Sequence record: NC_061441.1
Length of the DNA: 64,000 bases
Direction: 5' to 3' (one strand)
The notes under the pieces were generated by a model. It was not told the DNA's origin and made no database searches. It worked only from the letters and a program-made list of their open reading frames with translations. How positions within the stretch are numbered: position 1 is the first letter of the stretch; each line of letters begins with the position of its first letter. The position numbers were made by a program, and so were the translations under genes. Below are positions 5,869-63,531 of this stretch, piece after piece.

Positions 5869-5871
5869 TCA

Positions 5872-12499: not shown

Positions 12500-12862
12500 T
12501 TAGGTATTTACAGATTCTGGCGAGCGCTGCCACACAACGAATTTGACGTTCAGAGCCAGCTCCTCCGTTTCAGCAGCAAGCCTAGGCTCGTACTTATGTG
12601 CGTAGCCACGCAAACACTCAGGCCGGACTGCAAGCTGCACATTAATCTTTTGGATTGGGTTCGGCACCTGACTATATGAATGGTCTTCAATGATAACAAG
12701 GTTATCAATACGGAGAACACCAGGAACTTCAAACACTGTGGGCAGTATGCCTGGTTTGAATGCTGAACCCATAACTGTCTCATGGTATTCAACAAGCGCT
12801 TTAACCAACAAGCGGCCGGCAGACTGACTCAGTGTAAGATTGTACTCGGTACGGAATTCCAT
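12500..12862 (-). CDS. hypothetical protein
   Basis: 120 aa ORF with GGAG RBS. Confidence 0.55.
   Translation of the reverse strand: MEFRTEYNLTLSQSAGRLLVKALVEYHETVMGSAFKPGILPTVFEVPGVLRIDNLVIIEDHSYSQVPNPIQKINVQLAVRPECLRGYAHKYEPRLAAETEELALNVKFVVWQRSPESVNT
12505..12513 (-). promoter_or_regulatory. class 1 motif CTGTAAATA
   Basis: 26 nt upstream of start 12479; exact consensus. Confidence 0.55.
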
Positions 12863-18315: not shown

Positions 18316-18577
18316 CTCTATCCTCTAAAACAAATTGTAGTGTGCCCTGTATATTTACAGCTTCAAGGCGCTTACCTGTAGGCATTAACAGGCCATTCAA
18401 CACACCCAGCATATCAGCGCTGTGGCAGTCAGGTGCTATCTGGTGAACGTAGATATCATCAGGCACATCACCTGGGTTAAGCTGCCAAGCAGTACGCAAG
18501 GCAGCACCCATGAATGCCGGACGCTCTACCAGATGCCTGTTCAAAAATGAACATACGTCTTCGGCGCTCAACGTCAT
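18281..18577 (-). CDS. hypothetical protein
   Basis: 98 aa; ATGA overlap with the polymerase stop. Confidence 0.45.
   Translation of the reverse strand: MTLSAEDVCSFLNRHLVERPAFMGAALRTAWQLNPGDVPDDIYVHQIAPDCHSADMLGVLNGLLMPTGKRLEAVNIQGTLQFVLEDRDEDLPTAEEPR
18352..18360 (-). promoter_or_regulatory. class 1 motif CTGTAAATA
   Basis: 37 nt upstream of the clamp start. Confidence 0.55.
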
Positions 18578-21500: not shown

Positions 21501-21741
21501 TGGTCGGAAACGTATCTTCAAGATACTGAATCTGGTTTAGAAACAACTCACCTTCTGTCGAAGTAAAGATTCTGCCGCTACGCAGATCTTCGGTCGGCAT
21601 ATGATCGAGGACGAGAAGTGCTTTGCCACCTTTAGCGCTTTTACTTACGCTTTTCAAAAGTCGAACGCCATCGTAGGTCTGCATGTCTGCAAACTGTTCA
21701 GGCGGATCGAAGTCGAGGGATATAAACTTTGGTTTTTCCAC
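18574..21741 (-). CDS. polA: family A DNA polymerase with N-terminal uracil-DNA-glycosylase-like domain and 3'-5' exonuclease
   Basis: Exo VAVDTET; TGRTSASDPNLQQVP; motif A VDYSAHEVR; motif B RNAVKTVIFGLIY; motif C VSVHDSL; N-terminal KPDYVLTFGKAP similar to family-4 UDG. Confidence 0.95.
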   Translation of the reverse strand: MEKPKFISLDFDPPEQFADMQTYDGVRLLKSVSKSAKGGKALLVLDHMPTEDLRSGRIFTSTEGELFLNQIQYLEDTFPTKTTLDDWNFLVVSYNMFKTYDKGEQFKEDADAAFADRIREIIVDYKPDYVLTFGKAPFKALNNEKIQFSKDHYEHWYGVEIPTKVKHGSKKHSFVHLPNVSYHTVLNPMHIAGSSYTLGYMARWMLPWLNKGMRYKIAEVTCGKKRNWDLVYVTKVKQLEKILKRMKRAKKVAVDTETENLNRIKNKILTVQLSDDGQKAYVIPIYHRDSPFSPKELRKVRELFKDFFEENSNKYQIYTNAKFDLNVMRSNFGIRSYAANVWDIQAGEFANDENAKSLLNVTGAGYYNLANLTMQYGCQVYHEVSFGKEMRATIADVDLDESVQEYAGLDVIVPFRIAEQQLKRANDIKYAKYESMVSEQISDQIHAFSILETTGAGADIDYLFKLNLPNSPINEEIRNVEREFMNSPEVKAANKLICKDDNVPKMGLMGKVEVTKFDMSKSEHKQILFFDVMKLKPLKEGEQLRENGKKTGKLDKDFQAAYADIPLVALYSKLGKAYKLKNAYVNSLLKLWGESEDFKHDRSIRPTYGYLGVVTGRTSASDPNLQQVPSRSEMGKLIKRILIARKNRLLIKVDYSAHEVRGWSIISGDQGVADVFEQGRKLRHRFRTVPDPWIEHRVEAEGDVHKINAAYFFGIPNVMDVTKSVRNAVKTVIFGLIYQQGDKGLAKSTGRDVKEIAEIKGKFLTRFPVGLKWFDKIKKFAHENFYVESPVGRRRHLWGLMLPESHKEANMVHAACDRRAVNSPVQGFGSDLMMSAIRILDRMKYDYFKANGEYPDFDMNVSVHDSLTVDCDYKWIFLALDMIERAMTSAVVEVVQKRHEGFAFTSVPEIDFEIGASEKDVQGWNFSYVQLKKLIRDGLIVKRDELGEKDLDVDKVTDSIMQDQYHLMSDWMKKQLWANDIKIRSMDKVNPLTNKDKKNIKEWLAELPKNIKTFEKYEADEKAKKAAAAMGDGAPKKIKISKSMLRSALKGIGKK

Positions 21742-21779: not shown

Positions 21780-21788
21780 TATTTACAG
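21780..21788 (-). promoter_or_regulatory. class 1 motif CTGTAAATA
   Basis: 39 nt upstream of the polymerase start, just after a terminator. Confidence 0.6.
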
Positions 21789-23027: not shown

Positions 23028-23582
23028 TTATCGCTTCTTGGTCCAGTTGGAGTTCTGCTTAGGCTGCTGGTTATTTGCAGGCGCTGGTGCAGGCGTGTTG
23101 TCGTCCTCAATGTCATCTTCTTCATCGTCGATGACTTCTTCTTTTTCAGGCTCAGGCGCTTTCACCTGAGTGTTGAGGACAGATGCTGCGAGTGGTGCTT
23201 GCTGCACTGTATTTACAGTAGCAACAGGCTCTTGCACTGCGGCAGTACGCGCAACAGCAGCTTCACCTACAGCGTGTTCACGGACCATATCAACAGTGAC
23301 CAATTGACCTTTCTCTTTCAAGATCTCATCGGCGCGAGCTTGATCCCACTTGTCCCAAAGAATGTCGAGGCCTTTGTGCATGTAGTTCATGCCGGCAGGG
23401 AGTTTACCACGACCGTTGAAAGGCAGACCGTTCGAAGGAGTAGCTGGCTCGAACTCGTCCATCATCTCCCACTTACGTTTTGCTTCAATACACTTAGGGC
23501 CCCAGACACCGTCACACAGACCATCATAGAGTCCCATCATGGTCATGATAAGCTGGAGCTTCTGGTAGAATTTATTGAGCAT
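23028..23582 (-). CDS. protein with N-terminal peptidoglycan-binding-like domain and low-complexity tail
   Basis: QKLQ...MGLYDGLCDGVWGPKC matches the PG_binding_1 pattern (Q..L...G...DG.fGp.t). Confidence 0.55.
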   Translation of the reverse strand: MLNKFYQKLQLIMTMMGLYDGLCDGVWGPKCIEAKRKWEMMDEFEPATPSNGLPFNGRGKLPAGMNYMHKGLDILWDKWDQARADEILKEKGQLVTVDMVREHAVGEAAVARTAAVQEPVATVNTVQQAPLAASVLNTQVKAPEPEKEEVIDDEEDDIEDDNTPAPAPANNQQPKQNSNWTKKR

Positions 23583-23629: not shown

Positions 23630-26600
23630 TTACACTGCCTTGTTCTTGGTAGTGGTCAGTTTCAGACGGTCAAGAGCCGTCGTCAACTTCTTGATGTTCG
23701 TGATGTTGTAGCCTGCTTTCACGATCTTGTTGATACGTGCTTTCGCAGTAGCGACATTCTTCACGAAGCCAATCCACATGCCTGGCGACACATCGAAGGT
23801 ACCAAACTTACGAGTGTTCGGAATCTTCGTACCGACGAAACGTTTCATCTGCGGGTTAGTGTTCAGGTCGAACATGATACGCAGACGATCTTCCATTACC
23901 ATCGGGTATGCCTTGACGTGTTTCTTATCAGAGGCTGCCTTGTGACGAATCAGGAAGAACTGTTTCAACTGCTCCTGAGCTTTCAACGCCAGTTTGATGT
24001 TGAAGCCCATACGCGGCGTAGACTCGTCGAAGAAGTCCAGCACGAACTCCAAGCGCTTCTCGGAAGGCTTGTCGAATGCCAGTTTCTTCTTAACCTCAAT
24101 GAAGTCGAGCATCTTCTCGAAGTCTTCATAGTAGGCACAGTCGTAATACACGTAGTCACCGAACTCCACGAAGTCGAATGCCTTGAGGGCTTTCGCATCC
24201 GGGTCGGTAGCGTTCGCGTAAATAGCCACGAAGCCGTTGTACACGGTAGGCGTCAGTTCGAGCGCCATGTCTGCACCAGTCGCTTCTTCGACAGCGGCAG
24301 CAACAGGTTTCTTACGACGAGTCGTGTTGTCCAACACAGGCAGATCAGCAGGCTTACGACGACGAACACGGCCAGCAGCCTCAGCAACACCTTCGTTGAT
24401 TGGCTTACCTTCTGCTTTGTTCGTAGCACGTTGTTTGGCGCGAGCGGTCTTACGCGCTACAGCCACAACCTTCTTCTCTGTCTCAACGGTATCGGCAGTT
24501 TCTGTCTCGTCCTTAATCGTATCTTCAATTTCAATACGATTCGCTTCGGCCGTAGCACGTTTGCGATCTTTCTCGTTCGCCCACGGTTTACGCGCTTCGA
24601 AGAACTTCTTGAGATCAGCCTTGTCGACCTTAGTTGCGATGTGAACTTTGTTGGCAGAAATGCTAACAGTTTCACCTGTACCCGCCAGACGCACACGCAC
24701 CGTGCTGATAGGACTATCTGCACGGAGTTTGCCGTCAACTGTACGCGCAGTCACAGACACGATAACACCATTGCCGTACTCAGTAACGACAGGTGCACGG
24801 TTCAGAGAATCTTTCAGGTTCTCACCGTTCGTGAAGTTGCGGTTACGTGTCCAGTCCAGCAGACGCTCCAGACCCCAGCCGTAGCGATCAGGAATCTTCT
24901 GGTTGGCAACAAACGGAGTCTGCTCCATAACACGGAAGTCGTTCAGCGCCGGCGTAGCGGGTAGTGCCTGCATAGCCGCAACAGTCGTCTTACGCATCTC
25001 ATGGAATTCCTGAGACTCGATTTCGTTCAGGTCGCGCTTGGCAAAGAAGTACTGGGCGAAGTCTTCCATCGTGTTGTTGTCGATGAGCAGTTTCGCGCTC
25101 ATCTTGATCGGGTCCAGTTTGTACTGATCGAGTGCTTCGTAACGCTGGTTGCCCTTCTCATCAAAGCGCGTTTTCTCCAGTGTCTTCCACATCAGACGAG
25201 CGACCTTACCAACTTCAAGGGTCTTGTTCGTCATTACCCAGTCAATGAACACAACCTCACGAGCCATGTCGCCGGGCTTACCGTTCTCGTCCAACTTCGC
25301 AGCAGCAACGTCAGGACGGAAGATACGCGCAGTAGACTGATCGTAAGTACCCGGTGACCACGGAGTATCGCAGCGGATGATACGGCTACCCATCTGCATG
25401 TTGTGGCCTTCGGAGATTGCCTGTTCGTTCGCAATCAGAATCTGGACGTTGTTGTCCGTTTTGAATGCGTCGAGGTTAGCGTCTTTGTTCTGGCCCAGCT
25501 TACCAACTTCACCGTGATACACTACAGCAACTTTCTTGTAGTTCTCAGGCAGAGCGTTGTAGATAGCGTTAGCCGCACGAACGTAGCGCGTGAAGACAAT
25601 CAGCTTGCCCTGCACCTCTGGTTTCCAGTAGTCCGGATCGTCCGGAGGCGGAACCATTGAAGGCGGTAAGGCTTGACGTTTGTACTCTTCGGACTGCTTA
25701 CGTGCCAGATACTTCTGACCGTTGTAGACAGCAATGTCCAGTTCACGAGGAGTAACGCCTGGCTTCCAGTCGAAGATCTGCTGTTCACCAACCATCGGGT
25801 CACGTTCAGGCTGCACTTCGAAGTGCTTCTTGATACGGTCGATAATGGTCAGCACTTTCGCAGATACGAAGTTGGTAACACCAGCGGCTTCAAACGTCAG
25901 ACGTGCAACGTCATCACCCATCGGGTCAGTCAACATCATTTCCATACGCTGGAAGTACATGTTCAGGTCGGCGTTACCTGCAAGCAGTGCGCCCAGGTCA
26001 TCACCTTCCTCGATATCGTCTTCGTCAATGTCGGAAGCGTTATCATCAGCGCCACCAGCATCATCGTCTTCGTCATCGTTACCAGCAGAGGCTTTGCGTT
26101 TCGCAGCGTTGGCCGCGTCTTGCAATTTCTCCAGCACCTGTTCGTACATCGCGTTATACACCTCTTGGTGCAGCGCAGAGTTAGGAACAGACGGGTCATC
26201 GATCTCAACCTGAATGAAGGTGTCAATCGGGTTAGGCAGCATGAACGCCCAGTGCTTACGCTTGAACGAGATGAATGCAGTGTGGTTCGCCATACGAGAG
26301 TGAGCACGACGAATCATTTCGATATCGTCTTTCGCACCATCATACGCAACATCCAGTGAGTCACCGAACATTGCAGGCGTCATCAGCGCGGCCTGACCAA
26401 CGATATCACGCACACGGTCCGTTACCAGCGTACCAGTAGCGATACGAGCATAGCGAACGGACGGAGCAGTGAATACCGCTTTGGTGTTGAAGTGAACCTG
26501 CGAGCCAGCCTGACCACCAGAGAAGTTCTTCACTTTATGCGACTCATCGAGCAGCACATAGCTGAAACGGAAGCGGTTAACGAACTCTACAGCACCACGC

Positions 26601-29479
26601 ACACGAACACGCACACCGCCGATATCAACGTTGAACGTACCAGTCTGGAGGAAGCTCAGGCCAACGATATAGATCGTGTTGCGCGGAGCCTGCTGGATAA
26701 CGTCATACATGCGGTCTTCGCCCCACGTATTAACAGTGTCAGCAGTGATAGGCACTGCGTTCCAACCATCAACAACTTTGTGGAGGTCATCACACCAGTT
26801 CGCTACGAGGTTAGACGGACAGATGATCAGAGGACGAATCGTTTCTTCGCCAAGGTCATCCAGCTCTTTGATTAGAGCAGCAACGTCGGTCAGACCGATG
26901 ATTGTCTTACCGCCACCCGGTGCGATAAAGATTGTTGCGAAGCGTGGACGACGACGCAGAGTTTTGTGCGCTTCAACCTGATGCGGCAGTAACGCTGCAC
27001 CTGCTTTCAGACCTGGGATACGGATATCTTCAATCGTGATACCGCTATCCGGTTTCAGCTTCTCAATCTCCACTTCGGCCTGTTCGAAGTATTCGAGTGA
27101 TTTAGGAATCACGTCGCTGTACATCGTGGCGAACGGCAGAATGATTTGTTGCAGACGGTCAGAGCCTGGGGCCTGTTCGTCTTCAATCAGAGAGCTGAAC
27201 AACTTCTTACGATCACTACGAGCCAGAGCCTGAGTCATCTCACGATACAGCGCGCCACCGAAGTAGTTATTCAGTCGCGCCATGTCAGACAGCTTGGAGC
27301 TTTCACCCATCACGAAGTAGTGAGTGTGGTTCGGCAGAGATTCGGTTGCAGCCTGAATGCTACCCATCTCATTGAGAGAGGTCATAATCAGGTTAGACCC
27401 ACGCAGACCAGCAGCATCGTTCAGCACACGGAGCATCACGCGCATCATCGTCATTGCAGGACGTTCGTTAGCGAGGTCTGGAATTGAGAAGTCGTTCTCA
27501 ATCAGGTTCTGATACAGGTTCTGGTCCATCGGGCTTTCGGCCAATGAAGCATTCTCTGCGTCCATACCGATAGCAACACGCGCCTGCTGCACCAGAGTTT
27601 TCAGATCAGGAACTTGTTTGTTCTTGAGCATGAACTCATAGGTCTGACAGGTAGATGCGATAATCTGCACCAGCTCGTGGAGGTTAGAACCTTCGGTGCT
27701 GTTGTACTTGATGGTGCTGTCCGAAACAGCTTCCACCAGACGGCCAGCGCCAGATTCTGCTTTCGCCGCTTCGATCATCATGTCGTTAGACACTCGATAT
27801 GCAGCCATACCACCAGAAGACTGATTGTGGTGGATGTTACCGATTACGTTAGATGCAGAACGGAAGTTAGGTGCTTCACCAGGCTCTGCGAAGTCGTAGC
27901 CAAGTGAGTCGGCAACGTCCAGAGAGTTCGGCGCTTTCATGCCTACGGTACGTGTCTCTTTAACATCGAGACCGCCACCATTAGACGTGTTCACGATCAG
28001 CGCGAAGTCAGGGTCAATGCCGATGCACACGTTACTGAAACGAGAGAGCGACTTGGCCTTGGTCTGCACTTCACGGTCGAAGTCCAGATTACCGTTCTGA
28101 ATTGCGAACATGTTGGTACGCAGGGTATCGTGCTCGGTGGACAGAGGCACACCCTTTTCGAACAGGTCTTCGAGTACGCTGTTGAGAGAAGACTCGTAGG
28201 TCTTAACCATCTCAATGTCGATATCTTCACGACGAGGAAGCACTGCGAGAGTACCATTCGGCATGATCGTCAGACCGTTATCGTCTGCAACCACATCGTT
28301 TACCACATAGCCAAACTTCTCACGGAGTTTCTTCAACTCAGGCAGAGTGGTGGCCGAGGTAACGTAGCGTGGGATACGCGCAGCACGAGTGATACCAGTA
28401 CGAGTAGAGCCAGCAACACGGAAGTAGTAGCTCGCCCAACCCTGGAACCAACGATACAGACACATGGTCTGCGTGTCAGCGCCCTGAGAGATGTACTCGA
28501 CCATTTCTTTTTCGAAGTTAACGATCAGGCCGCCTTCAACGCGAACGTCAGTAGCGAGAGCGACAGGGTTAAAATCGACAGGCGTATCGTGGCTGATTTT
28601 CATCGCTTGAATCTTGCGATCAATCATCGCCTTGCCTGGGATAGGACGAATACCGATCGTCATGAAATCGCCCAGCGCTTCGGCAGCACCTTTGTCCAGA
28701 TTACGGAACAGGTCGATATCCATGTTGTGCATCAGCGGGTGAATGGAGCGCAGAGCCGCGTTATACACAGTCCAGTCTTTATCGAGAGGAATGCGGACCA
28801 TCTTCGTTTCGAATGCGTTGGAGTTGGTGCGTTCAACGCCGAAGATATCTTTGTACAGAGTCTTCGCCACACGAATCGCAGCCTGTGCAATATCAGAACT
28901 GTAGGTCTGAATGTTGGCACGTTCGAAGTTGGCGTCATTGTCCACACGAGGACGGTCGCTACCCTGATTGTTCAGAACGTTGAAGTTACCGTTCGAGGCC
29001 AGAGGACTTGTCGGGCATGGCGTACCAGACATGATAATGTCACGACCACCTGGGAAGCGCGTACTGTTTTCAATCACGGCACCAGATGCTGCGGACAGGT
29101 GTTCAGCCAGAGAGGTCTTAATCTCACGACTCAACTTGTCGCCGTTCAGTGACATATTGATACGCATGATGGACAGATCGATGTTGTTCTTAACACGCTT
29201 AACAAAATCGTCTGGCGCTACTTCCAGCATGTCTTCGAACTCTGCACCGTTGGTAACGATGTAGTTGATCAAATCGAATGCGGCGTAGATGCGAGCAACG
29301 GTAGATGCGGTGAACACTGCAAGGGTTTCGTAGTTACGACGAGACTTCCCTGTAGCGTACATTTTCGACATTTTACCATCGAACTCGGGCGGCAACGTCT
29401 TCACAGCCAGAGCCTGATTAAACGTATCGGCGATCTGCTGGGTTGCGGTTGCTGAGGTACTGATCATTTGATTCATCAT
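23630..29479 (-). CDS. giant SNF2-family helicase/translocase (1949 aa)
   Basis: LLPHQ (Q motif), APGGGKT, LLDESHKVK, IATGT, GHNMQ, PWSP...DQSTARIFR; N-terminal ISTSA tag. Confidence 0.85.
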   Translation of the reverse strand: MMNQMISTSATATQQIADTFNQALAVKTLPPEFDGKMSKMYATGKSRRNYETLAVFTASTVARIYAAFDLINYIVTNGAEFEDMLEVAPDDFVKRVKNNIDLSIMRINMSLNGDKLSREIKTSLAEHLSAASGAVIENSTRFPGGRDIIMSGTPCPTSPLASNGNFNVLNNQGSDRPRVDNDANFERANIQTYSSDIAQAAIRVAKTLYKDIFGVERTNSNAFETKMVRIPLDKDWTVYNAALRSIHPLMHNMDIDLFRNLDKGAAEALGDFMTIGIRPIPGKAMIDRKIQAMKISHDTPVDFNPVALATDVRVEGGLIVNFEKEMVEYISQGADTQTMCLYRWFQGWASYYFRVAGSTRTGITRAARIPRYVTSATTLPELKKLREKFGYVVNDVVADDNGLTIMPNGTLAVLPRREDIDIEMVKTYESSLNSVLEDLFEKGVPLSTEHDTLRTNMFAIQNGNLDFDREVQTKAKSLSRFSNVCIGIDPDFALIVNTSNGGGLDVKETRTVGMKAPNSLDVADSLGYDFAEPGEAPNFRSASNVIGNIHHNQSSGGMAAYRVSNDMMIEAAKAESGAGRLVEAVSDSTIKYNSTEGSNLHELVQIIASTCQTYEFMLKNKQVPDLKTLVQQARVAIGMDAENASLAESPMDQNLYQNLIENDFSIPDLANERPAMTMMRVMLRVLNDAAGLRGSNLIMTSLNEMGSIQAATESLPNHTHYFVMGESSKLSDMARLNNYFGGALYREMTQALARSDRKKLFSSLIEDEQAPGSDRLQQIILPFATMYSDVIPKSLEYFEQAEVEIEKLKPDSGITIEDIRIPGLKAGAALLPHQVEAHKTLRRRPRFATIFIAPGGGKTIIGLTDVAALIKELDDLGEETIRPLIICPSNLVANWCDDLHKVVDGWNAVPITADTVNTWGEDRMYDVIQQAPRNTIYIVGLSFLQTGTFNVDIGGVRVRVRGAVEFVNRFRFSYVLLDESHKVKNFSGGQAGSQVHFNTKAVFTAPSVRYARIATGTLVTDRVRDIVGQAALMTPAMFGDSLDVAYDGAKDDIEMIRRAHSRMANHTAFISFKRKHWAFMLPNPIDTFIQVEIDDPSVPNSALHQEVYNAMYEQVLEKLQDAANAAKRKASAGNDDEDDDAGGADDNASDIDEDDIEEGDDLGALLAGNADLNMYFQRMEMMLTDPMGDDVARLTFEAAGVTNFVSAKVLTIIDRIKKHFEVQPERDPMVGEQQIFDWKPGVTPRELDIAVYNGQKYLARKQSEEYKRQALPPSMVPPPDDPDYWKPEVQGKLIVFTRYVRAANAIYNALPENYKKVAVVYHGEVGKLGQNKDANLDAFKTDNNVQILIANEQAISEGHNMQMGSRIIRCDTPWSPGTYDQSTARIFRPDVAAAKLDENGKPGDMAREVVFIDWVMTNKTLEVGKVARLMWKTLEKTRFDEKGNQRYEALDQYKLDPIKMSAKLLIDNNTMEDFAQYFFAKRDLNEIESQEFHEMRKTTVAAMQALPATPALNDFRVMEQTPFVANQKIPDRYGWGLERLLDWTRNRNFTNGENLKDSLNRAPVVTEYGNGVIVSVTARTVDGKLRADSPISTVRVRLAGTGETVSISANKVHIATKVDKADLKKFFEARKPWANEKDRKRATAEANRIEIEDTIKDETETADTVETEKKVVAVARKTARAKQRATNKAEGKPINEGVAEAAGRVRRRKPADLPVLDNTTRRKKPVAAAVEEATGADMALELTPTVYNGFVAIYANATDPDAKALKAFDFVEFGDYVYYDCAYYEDFEKMLDFIEVKKKLAFDKPSEKRLEFVLDFFDESTPRMGFNIKLALKAQEQLKQFFLIRHKAASDKKHVKAYPMVMEDRLRIMFDLNTNPQMKRFVGTKIPNTRKFGTFDVSPGMWIGFVKNVATAKARINKIVKAGYNITNIKKLTTALDRLKLTTTKNKAV

Positions 29480-31150: not shown

Positions 31151-31159
31151 TATTTACAG
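31151..31159 (-). promoter_or_regulatory. class 1 motif CTGTAAATA
   Basis: 23 nt upstream of the HNH start. Confidence 0.55.
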
Positions 31160-38508: not shown

Positions 38509-38517
38509 TATTTACAG
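38509..38517 (-). promoter_or_regulatory. class 1 motif CTGTAAATA
   Basis: 30 nt upstream of the SbcD start, right after a terminator. Confidence 0.6.
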
Positions 38518-41013: not shown

Positions 41014-41022
41014 TATTTACAG
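41014..41022 (-). promoter_or_regulatory. class 1 motif CTGTAAATA
   Basis: only 7 nt upstream of ATG 41007, so a leaderless or near-leaderless transcript is possible. Confidence 0.45.
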
Positions 41023-51834: not shown

Positions 51835-51843
51835 TATTTACAG
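51835..51843 (-). promoter_or_regulatory. class 1 motif CTGTAAATA
   Basis: upstream of the operon leading to SbcC; follows a terminator. Confidence 0.6.
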
Positions 51844-54703: not shown

Positions 54704-54712
54704 TATTTACAG
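54704..54712 (-). promoter_or_regulatory. class 1 motif CTGTAAATA
   Basis: 38 nt upstream of the clamp loader start. Confidence 0.6.
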
Positions 54713-55472: not shown

Positions 55473-56060
55473 TTAGTTCAACATCGGAACAAGATTTTGC
55501 AAGAAATGTTTGCGGTCAAACGAACTGATTCGGTGCGGATGATCGACGTGCATGTTCCATCCTTTGTTGAACAGCAGCACGTTCTTCGGCAGGACAACGT
55601 TAAGGCCAACGCGAGTGAACGAATCACGAACGGCAGTCACTGGATTGTCGTCAACCAGAATCCAAGTACCTTCACCGTACTTCTCGTTCAGGTAAGCAAT
55701 CTTATCAGGATGCTGGCGTGAGTCCAGGCAGTCGATGTGGTCAAACAATGACAGGTGCTTCTCCAACACCTTGCGTGTGTAGCGTTCACCTTTGGCGTGA
55801 TAGCCACGATGCGTACAAATGCCAACACTGAAACCGTCGCGCACCAGCATTGCAACCGTTTGGATGAAGTAGTCACGCATGTTAGCTTCGAGCATGAAGC
55901 GACCGTCAGCCAGCATTTCCACGAAAGGTTCGTGACCATTCTCTGGCGTAATGTACGTGTCGGTACCTGGGTAGATCCCAAAGTTCATCAGATAGCACAG
56001 CATGAAGTTATGCGTATCGAATGCCGTGTCGTCCATGTCGAAGAAAATATATTTAATCAT
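55473..56060 (-). CDS. HAD-superfamily phosphatase / 5'-nucleotidase-like
   Basis: YIFFDMDDT (DxD motif I), ICTHR (motif II), K, ILVDD (motif IV). Confidence 0.8.
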   Translation of the reverse strand: MIKYIFFDMDDTAFDTHNFMLCYLMNFGIYPGTDTYITPENGHEPFVEMLADGRFMLEANMRDYFIQTVAMLVRDGFSVGICTHRGYHAKGERYTRKVLEKHLSLFDHIDCLDSRQHPDKIAYLNEKYGEGTWILVDDNPVTAVRDSFTRVGLNVVLPKNVLLFNKGWNMHVDHPHRISSFDRKHFLQNLVPMLN

Positions 56061-56398
56061 TAATGCCTCGTGCTGTTGCACAGAAAAGGTGTATCGTTGA
56101 TGAAGCCTAGATTCAACTGACAGGCAAGGTGAGTCAGTCGCATCTCATCGGCGTTGGTTACGATCATAACGTTAGCGTATGGGTCGAGTCGGAAGTTTGG
56201 AACTTCGATCAACTCAACGTTGAATGGACCAGACTCGTTCTCATTAATGAAGTACGCGCCAAGCATCCACGTTGTACCGTTATCATCTGGAAGTAGGTGA
56301 CCGATGATGCAATCCTCGTCCTGCATAACAATATGCAGTGGTCTATCGAAGTCCATATCTTCTGCACCAAATTCAAAATGGAAATCATCATCGCTCAT
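56060..56398 (-). CDS. hypothetical acidic protein
   Basis: 112 aa; TAATG coupling. Confidence 0.5.
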   Translation of the reverse strand: MSDDDFHFEFGAEDMDFDRPLHIVMQDEDCIIGHLLPDDNGTTWMLGAYFINENESGPFNVELIEVPNFRLDPYANVMIVTNADEMRLTHLACQLNLGFINDTPFLCNSTRH

Positions 56399-56400
56399 GG

Positions 56401-56976
56401 TTACGCCCTCAGATCAACAAGTATCGACGCACTCAAATCTCGAAGCATGTCACGGCCGAGAGAGGTGTACATCGTTTGAGAAACAACTATACGTTCAAGG
56501 AACAGGCGGGAACCAATGACGTCCCTGCCTAACTTCTGCTGAACGAACTCAATGATTGAAGACGGAGGCTGAATGAGGAACGTGAGTATCTCGGCATCGT
56601 GGAGAACGTTGCCCATAGCCGTCACAGGTCGCATTTCTGTTTCCTGATCAAGGATGTATGAGATGACTCGGTCTGCATTGCCTATGTTTGGATAGCGCTT
56701 GAAGAATCTACGCACCGCTTCTACGGTGTGCATGAAATCGTATTCCGGTCGGGTCGGCATACGAAGAAAGAGTGAAGCGAGCAACAGGTTTATTTCTAAC
56801 TGCGGACCTTGTTCAATGTTCAACATCGCATGTGCGGTCAGCACAACATTCAACGAGAAGTCACGAGTATAGAGCGGGTGAGAGGTCGCTGTCTGATCGA
56901 AATAGTCAAGGGCCTGACGCAACCCTTGACGTATTAACAGGTGCTCTGCTTTAATGCGGGACAGGCGTTGCATCAC
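56401..56976 (-). CDS. possible degenerate HD-domain-like helical protein
   Basis: helical pattern ending VLHDAEIL as in HD phosphohydrolase C-terminal motifs; HD dyad not intact. Confidence 0.35.
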   Translation of the reverse strand: MMQRLSRIKAEHLLIRQGLRQALDYFDQTATSHPLYTRDFSLNVVLTAHAMLNIEQGPQLEINLLLASLFLRMPTRPEYDFMHTVEAVRRFFKRYPNIGNADRVISYILDQETEMRPVTAMGNVLHDAEILTFLIQPPSSIIEFVQQKLGRDVIGSRLFLERIVVSQTMYTSLGRDMLRDLSASILVDLRA

Positions 56977-57947
56977 TCAGCGCCGCGAATCTCTTTCAGG
57001 CTATTCTTGATCGCTTTGCGCAGCGTCTTGCCTACATCAATGCCGTCAATGTGACGAGCAAACACGTTAGCGAATAGCGTGGTTGGATTCTTCATGATCG
57101 CTTTGTCGAGGTCAGGACGACCTTCTGCGATCTGTAACTCACCCGGCCAGAGTTCGGCAACCGCCGCGCTATCGTTAGCAGCAATCAGTTCCAGTTCACG
57201 GACCGAGATAGAGTTCTGCCGTGCAATCGTACGGAAGATTATGTCAACGAAAGGCAGCATGTCTTCGCTAACAACGTTCTTCACGTCTTTGGCATCACCA
57301 GCACGTTGGAAATCTTCCAACAGACCTTCGAGATGCGTCTGCGTGATCTTCTGGACGTTACGCAGTTTCTTGAACAGCATCATCCAGCGAACTTTACGCT
57401 TAGAACTCAGCAGGTGAGTCCACACTGATTCACCGAGTGCGATCATCAGACGGTTGTACACGTCAACGCTCAGGCTGTCACGATCAACGAAGACCGTGAT
57501 CTCATCATGCCATTCATCTTTACGGAATTTGCTGCGGAACGCATGAGTCTTCGAACCTGACTGCTGGACGAAGTTGATTTGTTTGCAGCGGCGTACAGCT
57601 TCCGCCAGATGATATTTCTCAATCACCTTAGGAAGTTTCTTAACGCCAACACGACACGCTTTTGCAACTTCGGCCTCACGACCGAAAAGAGATAGACGAG
57701 GCAGTCCGCCATAAACAGGCATCGAAGCGTATGGTCTGACTGTCACGCCACACACTGACATACCTGGCTCAGGGTCTGGTCCGAGAACACACAACACATC
57801 ACCAGACTTCGGACTGAACTTGATCGTCTCAGGGTCTGGCGTACTCAGCGTGTTGGCCAAAAGACCAACAGTGTTGCCGGTAGCCAGTACCAAATGGTTT
57901 TTGTTACCCTGCCTTACAACAAGGTAATCTTTTTCACTATGTTTCAT
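56973..57947 (-). CDS. hypothetical protein (possible inactive zincin-like C-terminal fold)
   Basis: 324 aa; IALGESVW and NPTTLFANVF at HExxH / ExFAE-like positions. Confidence 0.45.
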   Translation of the reverse strand: MKHSEKDYLVVRQGNKNHLVLATGNTVGLLANTLSTPDPETIKFSPKSGDVLCVLGPDPEPGMSVCGVTVRPYASMPVYGGLPRLSLFGREAEVAKACRVGVKKLPKVIEKYHLAEAVRRCKQINFVQQSGSKTHAFRSKFRKDEWHDEITVFVDRDSLSVDVYNRLMIALGESVWTHLLSSKRKVRWMMLFKKLRNVQKITQTHLEGLLEDFQRAGDAKDVKNVVSEDMLPFVDIIFRTIARQNSISVRELELIAANDSAAVAELWPGELQIAEGRPDLDKAIMKNPTTLFANVFARHIDGIDVGKTLRKAIKNSLKEIRGAE

Positions 57948-57955
57948 AACGACCT

Positions 57956-58486
57956 TTATAGTTGATCAACGATGTTCATCGTGTGAACTTCCGCTGTGTA
58001 GCCCTGACGGAAGATGCGACCTTCTGCGCGGCCTGTTGCCTGCTCTGCGGAAGGGACGCCCCAGCTTGTTGCGGGCTCAACCGAGATGAGTGCCTGCTCA
58101 TCCCACATGTCACCGTCTTCAAGGTAGTCGGCAATCATCTGGAGAGCAGCAGGACGATCGAGGCCCAAGTGCGCAAGCTCGGCGATAATGAGTTTCGGCG
58201 CAGTGGCGTCTTTCATTTCGTCGAGTTCGTATTGCAGATCGGAAAGCGAGTTAACCTGACGGCAGTCAGCGCTAGTCAGTCCGGCATACTCGTCTTGTCC
58301 AAAATAAGCAATTGCAAAGTCAGGAACATCAAGTTGACTGGAAAAGAAATGAGGAGCGTCCACCAAAACAGAAGGCGCGGCGCTCATCTGGAGAAAACTC
58401 ATGTATGGGCGTTGCATCTCATGAGCTTCTACCGAACAGGACTTCCCAGCAAGATCTTTCATTATGCTGTGTGCGAGATTATTCAT
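57956..58486 (-). CDS. hypothetical protein
   Basis: 176 aa; GAGG RBS. Confidence 0.5.
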   Translation of the reverse strand: MNNLAHSIMKDLAGKSCSVEAHEMQRPYMSFLQMSAAPSVLVDAPHFFSSQLDVPDFAIAYFGQDEYAGLTSADCRQVNSLSDLQYELDEMKDATAPKLIIAELAHLGLDRPAALQMIADYLEDGDMWDEQALISVEPATSWGVPSAEQATGRAEGRIFRQGYTAEVHTMNIVDQL

Positions 58487-58493
58487 TGTAACC

Positions 58494-58709
58494 TCATTTC
58501 TCAGGAGTAGGAGTAAAAGGGCTGTGGGTGTACGGAGTTAACTTATCCACGTACAGGAAACGAGATGAAGCACTACTGTAGCCAGAGCGTGGTACCGATT
58601 GCTTTTTCTTGGCTTCGGCCTCACGTCTATCCAGCTCGTCAAAGATACCTACGCGACGGGCGTACTTAAACTTCGGGTGTACGGAGATATGTTTGACGAT
58701 AGCTGTCAT
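58494..58709 (-). CDS. small basic hypothetical protein
   Basis: 71 aa; start overlaps the stop of the TnpB-like gene. Confidence 0.45.
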   Translation of the reverse strand: MTAIVKHISVHPKFKYARRVGIFDELDRREAEAKKKQSVPRSGYSSASSRFLYVDKLTPYTHSPFTPTPEK

Positions 58710-59737
58710 TTTTTATATTGTCCTGTAACAATGTAGACAAGGGATTTTTTGGAGACACGCGCATTGACGATCAAGTATTTGAACTCTTTCGTCGGCTCAA
58801 GTTCTCCAGCCGTCACACGAACTATTGGAATGTTCTGAATCTCACCGAACGTAAGTGTCGTCCCCATCTCATTGATTGAGCAGGAAGATGAAAGCGAAAC
58901 ACTATTCAACGACTTCTTTGAAATCATCGAAGGATGTTTACCGTGCTGGCGTTTGGCATCCAACCATTTTTGCCAGTCGGCTGTCGCGTGGTGCATTGAA
59001 CGTTTAATCAAAGAGCGTGGAACATCGCCTTCATACTGCTTGCGAAACTCCGTAATGACTTTCGAGTCAGGAGCACCTGCGGTTACGCGTCGTTTGTCCT
59101 TAAGCGCCCCCTTCAAATGCTCTGACCAATGGTCGTAGGCATCGCCACGGATCTGGATGTAATCATCCATCATCTGAGCTTGCGCCAAACTACATTCAAT
59201 TTCGAATGTCACCAACTTACCGCGATAGCTTGGCGTATCAGCCGAGTGCCGTTCAGCGAGTTTTGCCGCGCGTGTTTCAGCGATAAGTTTCTCTTTGATA
59301 CAAGCTGCCCATGAGTACACAAACGTCAATCGCAGATCAGGACCTTGCGCCAGCAAGTCAGGACAGAACTGCATTAACAGTGGGATAGCATAACCGAGAT
59401 AGCAACGACGTTCGATGAACGCGGACTTTAGGTCATCAGGATTGATTTTACCTTCACCGAGATTCGCAAACAGTTTTCGAGACTGCTTATACGACTCGGA
59501 GATATGGGAGCCATCATACACAACATCATCAATGGTAATTCCCGACTCAATGACTTTGGTGTACGCTTCTTCGATTGTAACATCAGGCCACGTCCTGTAC
59601 CCAACATCGGCCAGCAGAAAATTCTTATGGCAGAAGAACTCATACATGTGCAAAAAGTCCGCGACAGGCAGACTTTCTGGATATACGAATTGTTTGGGCG
59701 CTTTCTTTGGCGTGATACTAGCTTTCTTCTTAATCAT
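58706..59737 (-). CDS. TnpB-derived protein: unknown N-terminal domain plus TnpB WED/REC-like region, lacking RuvC
   Basis: aa ~171-343 align by eye with the IS200/IS605 TnpB N-terminal half (RGK...LAQ...YDHW...ALK; DVP..LIKRSM...ADWQKWL; GKHPSM.SKK; TLTFGEI; KYLIV...YIV); ORF ends where the RuvC-I strand would begin. Confidence 0.6.
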   Translation of the reverse strand: MIKKKASITPKKAPKQFVYPESLPVADFLHMYEFFCHKNFLLADVGYRTWPDVTIEEAYTKVIESGITIDDVVYDGSHISESYKQSRKLFANLGEGKINPDDLKSAFIERRCYLGYAIPLLMQFCPDLLAQGPDLRLTFVYSWAACIKEKLIAETRAAKLAERHSADTPSYRGKLVTFEIECSLAQAQMMDDYIQIRGDAYDHWSEHLKGALKDKRRVTAGAPDSKVITEFRKQYEGDVPRSLIKRSMHHATADWQKWLDAKRQHGKHPSMISKKSLNSVSLSSSCSINEMGTTLTFGEIQNIPIVRVTAGELEPTKEFKYLIVNARVSKKSLVYIVTGQYKK

Positions 59738-59744
59738 CGCTTTC

Positions 59745-61424
59745 TCACTGGAGTTTGCTGGCTATTTTCAGATACTCGCTATTTACAGTTTCCACATCCG
59801 TGTAACCCCTGCTGGCTGTAACGTCACGGCGTAGATCACCCATGCGGTAACCGTTTTCCCATAGACGCATAAACAACAGGCTGTTAAGAGTCGGCTGCAT
59901 GAACGGTTTTTCTTTCAATGCAACATCACCCTTATATTCGGTCAAGAGTATCGCGCCATCAAATTCGGCACTGCACCATTCGGCTTCCGCTAAAATTTTA
60001 AGCAGGTTATGATTCTCCATGCCTTGGATTAAATGACTAAGCACCGTGTACTGTTCCCGCTTGAAGCGATGCGCAGGTACTTGGTGTGAGCATCCTGAAT
60101 CGTTTTTGAAATAGTACGCACCGTTACGAGAATAAGAGGAATCTCGTATGCGCTCGCACAATTCACTGACGACTTCGGACGCAGGCTTAAACATCGCCTT
60201 CCACTTATCCCAAATAAATCCAACATGCTGGTGCATCTCTTTTTCATTCAGTCGAAGTTTCTTAACCGCATTGACGATCTTCGTGTCATTCAACAACTGA
60301 CGATAAATATCAGTAGCCATAGGCTTTTGTTGTTCGTTGTCCGTGCGTGTCTCGAATGATTGCTTGAAATATTTCTGGTTACTCCAGCCGCTATAAATTC
60401 CCCCGTAGTTGAGAGTCTTGGCTGTGCTGCGCGTAATGTTCAACTGCCGTGCAACCCTATCGTGATTGAGTTGCTCAAGTTCAGGACAATCTAGTCCATA
60501 CTGTGCCATCAGGTCTAAAAGCAAAACCATCTGAGCATTAGGCATGTCGAAGTTACGGCCATACGAATGATCGAAACATAACAGCTTCACCAATTTAGGT
60601 AGAGCGGCCGTAGTTCCAAACAATCGTGACCCAACGTGGTTCATTGTGTATTCGTCGTAAAACTCCACCAGCCTGTCGTTTGGATTATCGTTAACAAGCC
60701 TAAACCCGAAGCGACAAATCTTTTTCAGGAACGAATTGAGCCTGAGGTGCAGTTTCTTTCGGCGATTCGTTTTTGTATTGTGCATTATATCCAAGAATCG
60801 ATCGAGGTACAACCGATACGGACGTTGATTGGCCTGAGCCTTGTTTATCAGTTCGATAACCTCACCGCAATATGCTCTGCGATTTTCGAAGTTATGGGGA
60901 CGAATAAACGAGCGTGGCTTTATTTCGGAGCAGAACGAAGACGTTACCAAGTCGGCTTCGTTTTTATAGAGGGCCCTTCTACGCACAGGCTTCATGAGAT
61001 TGTACAGAGGCTCATCAAGCAAGGTCAGTTCGCAGAATATGTCCGTAAACACCTTATTAAGCGTGTACTTACGGGCGATCCCCTTAATGTAATCGTAACG
61101 AGTGTGGTCAACCTTTCGACCTAACCACGTAGCTACGGAGTATTCCTTGTGATACACCATCGCGTACCGCATCTTTTCGTGCTGACGCAGATAGGTGTGG
61201 GTCACTACCGTTTCGTTATAGACGTTTCTGCGTTCCATAACGCCCGATTTATCGAGAAGGTGCATGAAAAACCATGCAAGGCTCTCGTAAAACTTATCCG
61301 ATTTTGCTTTAGGTGGCTTAGGGCAAGAATAAATCGTGTCCCAGAAGAACTTGTGGGCCGATTTATTAACCGTGAACGCCCATCCTGGCATCACGGCCTT
61401 CTTGCGGTACACGGGCTTTGCCAT
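59745..61424 (-). CDS. divergent family A (TV-Pol-like) polymerase/primase, no exonuclease or helicase domain
   Basis: GSRLFG...LPK; motif A NFDMPNAQ; motif B RSTAKTLNYGGIY; LIQGMEN; motif C AEFDGA; start MAKPV has a GAGG RBS. Confidence 0.65.
   Translation of the reverse strand: MAKPVYRKKAVMPGWAFTVNKSAHKFFWDTIYSCPKPPKAKSDKFYESLAWFFMHLLDKSGVMERRNVYNETVVTHTYLRQHEKMRYAMVYHKEYSVATWLGRKVDHTRYDYIKGIARKYTLNKVFTDIFCELTLLDEPLYNLMKPVRRRALYKNEADLVTSSFCSEIKPRSFIRPHNFENRRAYCGEVIELINKAQANQRPYRLYLDRFLDIMHNTKTNRRKKLHLRLNSFLKKICRFGFRLVNDNPNDRLVEFYDEYTMNHVGSRLFGTTAALPKLVKLLCFDHSYGRNFDMPNAQMVLLLDLMAQYGLDCPELEQLNHDRVARQLNITRSTAKTLNYGGIYSGWSNQKYFKQSFETRTDNEQQKPMATDIYRQLLNDTKIVNAVKKLRLNEKEMHQHVGFIWDKWKAMFKPASEVVSELCERIRDSSYSRNGAYYFKNDSGCSHQVPAHRFKREQYTVLSHLIQGMENHNLLKILAEAEWCSAEFDGAILLTEYKGDVALKEKPFMQPTLNSLLFMRLWENGYRMGDLRRDVTASRGYTDVETVNSEYLKIASKLQ
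59780..59788 (-). promoter_or_regulatory. class 1 motif CTGTAAATA
   Basis: 43 nt upstream of 59737, inside the 3' end of the TV-Pol-like gene. Confidence 0.55.
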
Positions 61425-61455
61425 TTGGACCTCAAAACATGCGTTTCGTGGGTGA

Positions 61456-61464
61456 TCTTTACAG
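61456..61464 (-). promoter_or_regulatory. class 1 variant CTGTAAAGA
   Basis: 32 nt upstream of ATG 61424. Confidence 0.45.
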
Positions 61465-61755
61465 AATCCGTCTTTTTCTCGTGGTATGGAACTCAAATTG
61501 CATCATCAGATTAGGTAGATAGGAGATATCAGCATGTTCATGCAGCATGAGCGCACTATAGTCACAAGAAATCAGCAGTCTGAAACCAGAACCCTGCTCC
61601 CAGGAAGCATATCCCTTTGAAATAACCATGCCGAAACAGGCGAAAACGTACAACCTTGAATAGACTGGTTATTTGGTGTCAATGCAGAGGATTCTTAATC
61701 CCAGCATGTGGACGTGCAAAGGGAGTGCTCCCGGGATGAATCTACAGGAAAGTGG

Positions 61756-62415
61756 TTATTTTTTGCGCGAAACGCGCTTACCCAGTTTTACACCGATTTG
61801 CGTCATAATGCGCTTCACGGTCTCTCCGTCATGGTCCTCAATGGCGTTTGCGAGTTTTTCGCCCTGCTCGCGTGAAAGCTCAGGCATAATCAGTTTTAGC
61901 ATCTGCGAACGCATTTTCGCAGACTTTGATTTGCCGCGTGATAGAGATTGTGTGTCCATTTCGTTTGCAACACGGCTCATGGTGCGCTGCACACGACGAT
62001 CTGCGAAGATATCAGCAAAGATATTGCCGAACAGGTCCTGGAACGAACGTCCACCGCCCATAATGTCGTCTTTTGTGAAACGAACAGGCTGTCCAAGCGC
62101 ATTCTGCTTATTGCAGTGCGTGGATTCCACTTCGTTTTGAGTACGTCCACCAGCACGGAAGTTCTCATCAGGGCGTGACGCTTTACCCTCTGCGCCTGGT
62201 TTAGTGTTGCCGTTGCGCAGATCTGCATCGCCTTCAACAGCCTTATCTGGGTCGAACATGTCGTCCGCTGTCTCGCTTTGGTTAGCGTCAAACGGAATCT
62301 TGCCCGTCAGCTTATTCGGGTCAGGCCAGCTCTTTGGAATATCAGAAGCAGGTTGCGCTTTGTTCGTCATATCGCCGTTAGCTTCGCTATTCAGGCTGAT
62401 CATAATACGTGCCAT
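61756..62415 (-). CDS. hypothetical protein with a MARIMISLNSEA tag variant, probably virion-associated
   Basis: 219 aa; AGGAG RBS; in operon behind a class 2 motif. Confidence 0.5.
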   Translation of the reverse strand: MARIMISLNSEANGDMTNKAQPASDIPKSWPDPNKLTGKIPFDANQSETADDMFDPDKAVEGDADLRNGNTKPGAEGKASRPDENFRAGGRTQNEVESTHCNKQNALGQPVRFTKDDIMGGGRSFQDLFGNIFADIFADRRVQRTMSRVANEMDTQSLSRGKSKSAKMRSQMLKLIMPELSREQGEKLANAIEDHDGETVKRIMTQIGVKLGKRVSRKK

Positions 62416-62424
62416 TCGAATCTC

Positions 62425-63531
62425 CTATCGGATTTTATAGCCTTTGAAAATGTTGTACGCAACTTCTTTGCGCTGTACAGGACGAGTGGTACACACCCAT
62501 TCCCACTGATCGTTCTTGGCCGTGCGTTTCTTCGGTGCTTCCATTACTTTCAGCACGTAGTTTTTGAAAGGCACAACAAGAATGTCCTCCGGTTCCAGAG
62601 GGCCACAACGTGCAGGCAGAACGACTGTGAGGTTGCCGACAGTCAGTTCCTGATCGTAGTTCAACACGTTGGCCTCTTCGCTGAGGTTACCTTTAACCGC
62701 AGGCACACCTAAATCGAAGATGATTGTGGCGTGTGTGAAAGCCTCAACGCCTTTGACGCGCACAATCACATGCTTACCCCGCCACGGCTCCAGATTAGCA
62801 GCAGTCAGCTCCTGTTCTACACCGTTAACAACCAGTACAGGGCGTGGGAATGCAGGCAGCAACTGTTCATTCAATCGTACCGAATAAGTCGCCTGCGTAA
62901 AGTATTTTGGAATAAGCTGATCGAAATCAACGTGTCCGTCTTTACGTACCTGCCTGAATGTCGCAGGGCTGGTGGATTGATCGAGCGTATACGCCGTCAG
63001 TGTTTTGGCGTGATGGTGCGTCATGACGTTGTAGATAAAGCCTGTGCTGATAAAGCCAGGCACAATGCCCTGACGGAAGCAGATGCCGCAGTTCGCAACG
63101 TTACCTGCGTCCCATCCGTTCGACACTTCCTCGTCGCCGTTGCCCATGAGATCGGCAGCGCCCATTACAGCGTTCATGCCGTCGTCGATATCATCAAGGC
63201 TTACTGTTTGGCGTCCACCACCAAACATACCTTTCGATACTGGTGCGATCTTAACGTTCGCGTCCATTACAGATGATTCGCGGCCAATCGACTTCATGCC
63301 GCCCACCTGTTCGTCGAAGATATCGTTGTCCACTTTGTTGCAGCTACAGGTTAGACCCATCTTCGCTTTCTTGAAGATGACGATATCGGTCGCATCAACC
63401 TGTAACGCCTGTTCAACTTTCGACTGCACAACCTTCTGCACCGAGTCGAGGCGTTGCTGGACGCGTTCGGTTTCGTAGGTCTTATGGCGGTCGTAAGCAG
63501 TTCGCGGTCTTCCGCGTTCAATCCAGCTCAT
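62425..63531 (-). CDS. putative head-closure / neck protein
   Basis: CSC and CGICF..G..PGF Cys motifs; C-terminal beta-barrel-like segment LTVVLP...DILVV...Y.LKV. Confidence 0.4.
   Translation of the reverse strand: MSWIERGRPRTAYDRHKTYETERVQQRLDSVQKVVQSKVEQALQVDATDIVIFKKAKMGLTCSCNKVDNDIFDEQVGGMKSIGRESSVMDANVKIAPVSKGMFGGGRQTVSLDDIDDGMNAVMGAADLMGNGDEEVSNGWDAGNVANCGICFRQGIVPGFISTGFIYNVMTHHHAKTLTAYTLDQSTSPATFRQVRKDGHVDFDQLIPKYFTQATYSVRLNEQLLPAFPRPVLVVNGVEQELTAANLEPWRGKHVIVRVKGVEAFTHATIIFDLGVPAVKGNLSEEANVLNYDQELTVGNLTVVLPARCGPLEPEDILVVPFKNYVLKVMEAPKKRTAKNDQWEWVCTTRPVQRKEVAYNIFKGYKIR

Follow-up and report, generated by a model that had tools for sequence, protein, structure and literature searches.

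A jumbo-phage protein with a predicted TnpB-type WED/REC lobe and no RuvC nuclease domain

The window analysed here, a 64,000-nucleotide stretch of sequence record NC_061441.1, carries on its minus strand a gene for a protein of 343 amino acids whose C-terminal half is predicted to fold as the WED/REC lobe of TnpB, the nuclease of IS200/IS605 insertion sequences, and which ends where the nuclease half of TnpB would begin. Over positions 56000–62500 the window matches Erwinia phages pEa_SNUABM_18 and pEa_SNUABM_16 at 100% identity; these are jumbo phages of about 266 kb in the genus Alexandravirus, and their host is Erwinia amylovora, the fire-blight bacterium. The gene is that of MPK64_gp221, a 'hypothetical protein' of pEa_SNUABM_16 (100% identical; gp221 hereafter). 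The protein is very probably TnpB-descended, although it has no RuvC domain, no TNB zinc finger and no match to a TnpB sequence model, and its substitution pattern is that of a gene under strong purifying selection. Our preferred explanation, to which as a whole we give a probability of about 0.5, is that the lobe binds nucleic acid without cutting it and acts in phage DNA metabolism together with the product of the adjoining upstream gene.

The predicted lobe and the missing nuclease half

The architecture of gp221 and its position in the window are as follows.
58706–59737, minus strand: gp221 gene, 343 codons plus stop
59237–59737, minus strand: N-terminal helical domain, residues 1–167 (helices within 25–164; T49-W50-P51 invariant across the family)
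59192–59215, minus strand: predicted WED strand β1, residues 175–182 (strand 8–14 of the 176-residue model; topology of ISDra2 TnpB)
58907–59191, minus strand: predicted REC-type helical insertion, residues 183–277 (helices 184–211, 225–232, 241–260 and 274–277; from the model, Foldseek and the published plan)
58709–58906, minus strand: predicted WED strands β2–β7, residues 278–343 (from the same three sources)
58494–58709, minus strand: downstream open reading frame (ORF) of 71 amino acids, found beside all three partner types described below; its start overlaps the gp221 stop by 4 nt

Residues 168–343 were modelled alone with AlphaFold2 from a 16-sequence alignment, giving a predicted local distance difference test (pLDDT) score of 90.6 and a predicted template-modelling (pTM) score of 0.84. 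When this model was compared with the PDB using Foldseek, ranks 1–35 were occupied entirely by the TnpB/Cas12 superfamily, and beyond them the match probability fell below 0.1. ISDra2 TnpB was the best match (8exa, chain A; E = 2.3e-5, probability 1.0, query-normalized template-modelling score, TMq, 0.66). The entry 8ex9 (chain A), in which only WED and REC are resolved (166 residues), gave a TMq of 0.66, a target-normalized score (TMt) of 0.69 and a root-mean-square deviation of 4.3 Å; ISFba1 TnpB, several Cas12f proteins, Cas12k, dCas12f, Fanzor2, Cas12n, TranC and Cas12m followed. The match covers the whole WED and REC lobe of 166–176 residues, including the insertion point between β1 and β2. 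In the viral structure library BFVD, the TnpB-like/Fanzor 'transposases' of giant viruses are the first matches outside the protein's own family. AlphaFold2 modelling of the whole protein (pLDDT 76) gave the helical N-terminal domain (25–164), a poorly predicted linker and the C-terminal domain, and the best PDB matches of that model, with weak E-values, were again TnpB (ISFba1, ISDra2), Fanzor2 and Cas12f/n.

The modelled order of elements is a strand (175–181), four helices (184–211, 225–232, 241–260 and 274–277) and six strands extending to residue 341. In ISDra2 TnpB the WED domain consists of residues 1–12 and 117–176, which form a seven-stranded oligonucleotide/oligosaccharide-binding (OB) barrel; a four-helix REC domain (13–116) is inserted between WED β1 and β2, and RuvC begins at residue 185 (PMC10097598). 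The phage domain is 176 residues long, the span of ISDra2 TnpB residues 1–176. An earlier reading of the window, made from the letters of the sequence and called the sequence-only reading below, had placed residues ~171–343 on the N-terminal plan of TnpB; as a fold this holds in the predicted model, in the comparison with TnpB/Cas12 structures of the PDB and in BFVD. We therefore have considerable confidence in the modelled architecture and in the ancestry that it implies. The family-invariant residues of the lobe (S225, T229, R232 and P240-R241-S242) lie on the second and third REC helices, which, by simple numbering offset and not by alignment, may correspond to the helices with which ISDra2 TnpB contacts its transposon-associated motif (TAM). 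The C-terminal half is basic in eight of nine relatives, with an isoelectric point (pI) of 9.5–9.8 and a net charge of +6 to +13.

The N-terminal domain is a different matter. Most ten-residue blocks of its helices (25–164) have a pLDDT of 82–91 in the full-length model, the linker at 165–174 being of low confidence, and Foldseek searches of the PDB and BFVD gave no match outside the C-terminal half; this domain has neither a structural nor a sequence match. The domain said by the sequence-only reading to have been newly added is thus present, as a helical domain of residues 1–167 unrelated to TnpB. Also as that reading had it, the ORF is intact (an ATG start and a single stop at its end) and the stop falls just short of RuvC: the predicted protein terminates two residues past the final strand of WED, at the point where a linker and RuvC follow in TnpB. 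No sequence follows WED, so that linker, RuvC (an RNase H fold with a D-E-D triad), TNB zinc ribbon and C-terminal domain are all lacking; the C-terminal half holds only two cysteines. Nor is an adjacent tnpA or an insertion-sequence (IS) end to be seen, in keeping with the same reading: no neighbour has a Pfam match of any kind, and no terminal direct or inverted repeats surround the gene or the cassette described below. The gene is not an insertion sequence.

A split TnpB, with RuvC encoded by the downstream ORFs, was considered and rejected. The products of the 71-amino-acid ORF and of a 176-amino-acid ORF show no zinc-finger or RuvC signs (overlapping frames were not joined), and the former ORF is not part of the cassette but belongs to flanking DNA that phage pEa_SNUABM_22, whose partner gene is unrelated, has at 98% identity. 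The first 27 residues of the 71-amino-acid product are strongly conserved across all genera, the rest varying in sequence and length (51–112 amino acids).

Sequence comparison placed gp221 only in its own family. The protein had no match in Pfam, PHROGs or NCBIfam, and none among PDB sequences either as a single protein or as a family profile. With nine family members searched against Pfam at E ≤ 10, no TnpB-related model appeared (OrfB_IS605, HTH_OrfB_IS605, OrfB_Zn_ribbon), and the NCBIfam TnpB model was likewise without a match. A word-indexed search of 5.8 billion proteins returned 11 clusters of the family, and an exhaustive hidden Markov model search of 1.84 billion representatives returned six matches, all of the same family. 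The relatives from both searches measure 309–389 amino acids, none being long enough to contain RuvC.

Conservation and the exchangeable cassette

The gene is maintained by selection in both of its halves. Against the homologue of pEa_SNUABM_35 (84% identity, synonymous divergence dS 1.3), the ratio of nonsynonymous to synonymous substitution rates (dN/dS) is 0.067 overall, 0.073 for residues 1–170 and 0.061 for residues 171–343; other pairs with unsaturated dS give 0.09–0.27. Twenty-two phage records carry homologues, nearly all of full length and with identities from 100% down to 26%, and in each the gene occupies the same position. The carriers are all jumbo phages of Erwinia or Dickeya and represent at least six genera (Alexandra-, Sasquatch-, Snu-, Rivs-, Yoloswag- and Salmondvirus); a survey of IMG/VR recovered only the same isolates and nothing further. 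The earlier claim that the gene is no pseudogene is borne out, since dN/dS is about 0.07 in each half and the ORF stays intact down to 26% identity; across the homologues the check showed purifying selection and no neutral decay. Judged by these rates, gp221 is an exapted module under strong purifying selection and not a decaying remnant.

The gene forms part of a unit that is exchanged between closely related phages.
58710–61759, no strand assigned: exchangeable cassette of intergenic region, 559-amino-acid gene and gp221 gene, delimited by comparison with pEa_SNUABM_22
59745–61424, minus strand: upstream partner gene, 559 amino acids, phrog_30690; weak collinear likeness to family-A polymerase palm/fingers
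61425–61755, no strand assigned: intergenic region, part of the cassette, holding the CTGTAAAGA motif, a sigma70-like promoter and a palindrome
61456–61464, minus strand: CTGTAAAGA variant motif in the intergenic region
61555–61584, minus strand: sigma70-like promoter, with −35-like and −10-like hexamers and an 18-nt spacer
61538–61550: 13-nt palindrome directly after the sigma70-like promoter
59780–59788, minus strand: promoter-like motif CTGTAAATA, 51 nt before the gp221 ATG and within the 3'-terminal part of the upstream gene
Locus L008, 4211–6733, and locus L009, about 3858–6440: alternative cassettes, counterparts of window 58710–61759
Locus L008, 4221–4694, and locus L009, 3868–4365, minus strand: partner genes with a W-P motif, compared with gp221 residues 49–51

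Up to position 58709, pEa_SNUABM_22 matches the window at 98% identity; the match resumes at 61760 (93%), with different DNA in between. Its cassette consists of a 543-amino-acid gene and a 157-amino-acid gene, and that of phage Alexandra of a 525-amino-acid gene and a 165-amino-acid gene. The large proteins of the cassette types are distant homologues (17–23% identity; the 23% pair has E = 4e-13), whereas by BLASTP and hhalign the small partners are unrelated to gp221 and to each other. Of the three partner types, the one with the TnpB lobe is found in 22 phage records and the others in 7 and 9; the former is probably the older state, because no other type was found outside Alexandravirus (plus one unclassified phage). 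The limits of the swap coincide exactly with gene edges, so that intergenic region, large gene and partner gene move as one unit of about 3 kb, and from this exact unit of exchange it may be argued that the three work together.

All three partner types bear a W-P motif near the N-terminus; it is invariant in the gp221 family and anchors all three profile alignments. The alternative partners, at 157–165 amino acids, are about the size of the N-terminal domain of gp221. Comparison of that domain with the two alternative partners by hhalign gave no significant homology (E 0.09–0.4). An older partner protein may have acquired the TnpB lobe as an addition, the W-P likeness being statistically not significant.

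The stop of the 559-amino-acid gene and the start of the gp221 gene are 7 nt apart, the two proteins diverge in step and metagenome contigs carry both. We consider a working partnership between them an even proposition. Searches of the PDB, Pfam and two large protein collections with the 559-amino-acid protein found only its own family. Its family profile matches the fingers region of DNA polymerase gamma weakly (E 0.4–0.9), and hhalign against a profile of seven phage family-A polymerases gave a weak collinear alignment of 120 columns (residues 223–346; E 0.036, probability 1.4%); 'polymerase-like' is a lead only. Blocks of this protein are conserved across all cassette types, and its homologue in pEa_SNUABM_5 is labelled 'putative helicase'. 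A canonical family-A polymerase of 1055 amino acids is also present in the window (18574–21741).

The motif ahead of the gp221 gene recurs through the window, in which a scan found 11 copies of CTGTAAATA (one of them CTGTAAAGA) where 1.0 would be expected; every copy is on the coding strand.
12505–12513, 18352–18360, 21780–21788, 23210–23218, 31151–31159, 38509–38517, 41014–41022, 51835–51843, 54704–54712, 59780–59788 and 61456–61464, minus strand: copies of the 9-nt motif

Eight of the 11 copies stand 15–51 nt upstream of a start codon, and the genes behind the motif encode the family-A polymerase, clamp-like, clamp-loader, SbcD-like, small polymerase-like and GTP-binding proteins, the 559-amino-acid protein and gp221. 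That the gene has its own promoter motif, as stated by the sequence-only reading, agrees with the conservation of the element 51 nt before the ATG: a perfect copy of CTGTAAATA lies 43–52 nt upstream of the homologue in all eight type-A loci examined (those of the TnpB-lobe type), including loci at which protein identity is 26–30%. The motif looks like a phage-specific promoter element for replication and recombination genes. In form it recalls the T4 late promoter. Because the same motif precedes both, gp221 appears to be co-regulated with the replisome genes. The sequence-only reading had been made without this context of a two-gene cassette and a promoter motif common with replication genes.

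The gp221 gene belongs to a long minus-strand run that includes genes for a tail sheath, a family-A DNA polymerase with exonuclease, sliding-clamp-like, clamp-loader and SbcCD-like proteins, and helicases. Three other minus-strand genes of the window were noted. That at 56973–57947 is annotated 'peptidase' (phrog_17197; 'endopeptidase family M34' in pEa_SNUABM_5) and had no Pfam or PDB sequence match, which leaves the annotation on thin evidence. In an ORF of 1949 amino acids (23630–29479) the SNF2-related and helicase C-terminal domains are confined to the second half, and an ORF of 1336 amino acids (1858–5868) has no Pfam match at all.

Possible functions of the lobe

Both TnpB and TldR read the TAM duplex with the WED/REC cleft and hold the guide-RNA scaffold on WED together with RuvC (PMC10097598; bioRxiv 10.64898/2026.09.22.753285). 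Binding of DNA or another nucleic acid suits gp221 because its C-terminal half is basic and the corresponding cleft of TnpB is the TAM-duplex reader, and a DNA-recognition module is more economical than an RNA-guided one because a guide scaffold needs WED with RuvC. On balance, therefore, a non-catalytic role in nucleic-acid binding is the better-supported assignment for the lobe. It would keep its TnpB job of gripping a DNA duplex with the TAM-reading cleft, perhaps next to a duplex/hybrid junction; it would not cut and would probably not use a TnpB-style guide RNA. The N-terminal domain would connect this recognition lobe with the upstream protein inherited alongside it, possibly a minimal family-A-like polymerase, and the structure of the cassette and the common promoter motif suggest that the two proteins would act together in phage DNA metabolism.

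Several observations weigh against this explanation. The structural case consists of AlphaFold2 models from shallow alignments (11–16 sequences), and gp221 is not recognized by any TnpB sequence model tried and has no sequence-level similarity to TnpB. The proposed correspondence with the TAM-contact helices comes from a simple numbering offset. The homologue of Dickeya phage JA11 has a neutral C-terminal half (pI 7.0). With respect to the partner, hhalign of the 559-amino-acid protein against the phage's own PolA was negative, Pfam DNA_pol_A did not match it, and at an hhalign probability of 1.4% the polymerase reading is weak. Close relatives, moreover, manage with unrelated partners of 157–165 amino acids, and the TnpB lobe is thus not indispensable to the locus.

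A more specific form of the preferred explanation, which we regard as a long shot, would have the lobe recognize sites or junctions as a subunit of a minimal family-A-like polymerase and would make the cassette a self-contained initiation module. Such a module would combine the polymerase with an intergenic cis site and with a reader gripping the duplex beside an RNA:DNA or primer–template junction, using the cleft with which TnpB holds the TAM/heteroduplex boundary in the service of phage DNA replication or recombination. If true, this would be the first RuvC-less and probably guide-free exaptation of TnpB/Cas12 and the first link between this scaffold and a polymerase.

An unlikely alternative is that gp221 is a protein-only transcription factor or autoregulator, the lobe reading a short motif in the manner of a TAM, for instance the palindrome of the cassette, independently of the upstream protein. 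The basic C-terminal half would suit such a role, cis region and gene are swapped together, and the palindrome (61538–61550) follows the −10-like hexamer. The 35-nt promoter/palindrome block (61538–61584, minus strand) is nearly invariant in four type-A phages, the surrounding intergenic DNA having diverged, and may be an early promoter with an operator. However, conservation of the block does not extend to pEa_SNUABM_5 and Yoloswag, which are more distant type-A phages, a palindrome is not the site that one would expect of a monomeric TAM reader, and the tight pairing with the 559-amino-acid gene would be left unexplained.

Somewhat less probable still is an RNA-guided DNA-binding regulator resembling TldR, in which a phage-encoded guide RNA would direct the protein to block or recruit transcription at matching sites. 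The parent family and all known exaptations (TldR, dCas12f-sigmaE, Cas12k) are RNA-guided, TnpB WED contacts guide-RNA stems (PMC10097598), and the cassette offers 330 nt of non-coding DNA with conserved blocks. Yet the scaffold surface needs WED and RuvC, the whole of which is missing here, and even deletion of the C-terminal region of TldR destabilized that protein (bioRxiv 10.64898/2026.09.22.753285). Rfam gave no guide-RNA match either at the gathering score or at E ≤ 5, a tRNA scan produced nothing convincing and RNAalifold returned a weak consensus fold for the intergenic region (−19 kcal/mol over 377 columns). TnpB guides are encoded directly 3' of the gene, but at gp221 that DNA is occupied by a conserved protein-coding ORF outside the cassette. 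No guide RNA was thus found by Rfam or RNAalifold, a result with the limit that sequence alone cannot prove the absence of an unfamiliar RNA.

That the fold arose by convergence, as an OB barrel with a helical insertion formed independently of TnpB, is improbable. OB folds are common, the structural alignments to TnpB show only 12–15% identity and no profile method links the two. The 35 best PDB matches are nevertheless drawn exclusively from the TnpB/Cas12 superfamily before the probability drops below 0.1; the match spans the entire two-part lobe with its β1/β2 insertion point (TM 0.66–0.69), the 176 residues equal the span of the ISDra2 lobe, and a second structure library agrees.

The sequence-only reading had also raised the idea of a decoy inhibitor of host TnpB/Cas12 guides. 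As a counter-defence protein, such a nuclease-less mimic would sequester guide RNAs or target sites belonging to the TnpB/Cas12 systems of the host or of rival elements. There is no positive evidence for this idea, and we judge it very improbable. The protein is phage-encoded and its locus is polymorphic among nearly identical phages, like many arms-race loci, but the PADLOC defence models matched neither gp221 nor the 559-amino-acid gene nor the alternative cassettes. A promoter motif common with replication genes and conservation across six genera are unlike typical fast-turnover anti-defence genes, and a RuvC-less lobe should bind TnpB-type guides poorly. Erwinia amylovora, moreover, carries type I CRISPR systems and is not known to carry type V. 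Finally, a decaying IS fragment, of which a truncated TnpB-like coding region would be the expected residue, is excluded by the selection and conservation data (dN/dS about 0.07 with dS above 1, intact full-length ORFs down to 26% identity and a conserved promoter motif), and neither tnpA nor terminal repeats are present.

Relation to known TnpB derivatives and significance

With TnpB itself (IS200/IS605 members ISDra2 and ISFba1; PDB entries 8exa, 8ex9 and 8iaz), gp221 has in common, as predicted, the seven-strand WED OB barrel, the REC domain between β1 and β2 and the length of 176 residues. It differs in having no linker, RuvC, TNB zinc finger, C-terminal domain, tnpA, transposon ends or detectable guide RNA, and in the 167-residue N-terminal domain that precedes β1. 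TldR proteins, like gp221, are TnpB derivatives exapted for a non-cutting role, occur in phages too and retain REC and WED (bioRxiv 10.64898/2026.09.22.753285). They keep, however, a degenerate RuvC that holds the guide and they adjoin their guide-RNA gene, whereas gp221 has no RuvC and no such RNA was found; the distinction from TldR drawn by the sequence-only reading is therefore upheld. In Cas12k, dCas12f-sigmaE, Cas12m and TranC, which are among the structural matches, the scaffold is likewise reused for binding instead of double-strand cutting, coupled to transposase or RNA polymerase, but all keep the RuvC fold with a guide RNA or CRISPR array and none is a stand-alone lobe. The Fanzor/TnpB-like 'transposases' of giant viruses are virus-encoded members of the superfamily and the next-best matches in the viral structure library, although they are full-length nucleases of 400–850 amino acids from eukaryotic viruses. 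The searchable literature describes neither a RuvC-less derivative of TnpB nor any TnpB-like protein of these phages, and all TnpB/Cas12 exaptations reported in it keep the RuvC fold.

The known reuses of TnpB, namely Cas12 in immunity, Cas12k in transposition, TldR in repression, dCas12f-sigmaE in activation and Fanzor, retain both the RuvC fold and a guide RNA. A lobe-only protein kept by selection, if true, would mean that the recognition half is able to fold and function by itself and to be joined to other domains; it would provide a very small (176-residue) natural DNA-reading module and widen the view of the ways in which RNA-guided nucleases are taken apart and put to new use. A further gain would be a first clue to the function of a polymorphic two-gene cassette in jumbo phages under development against fire blight and soft rot.

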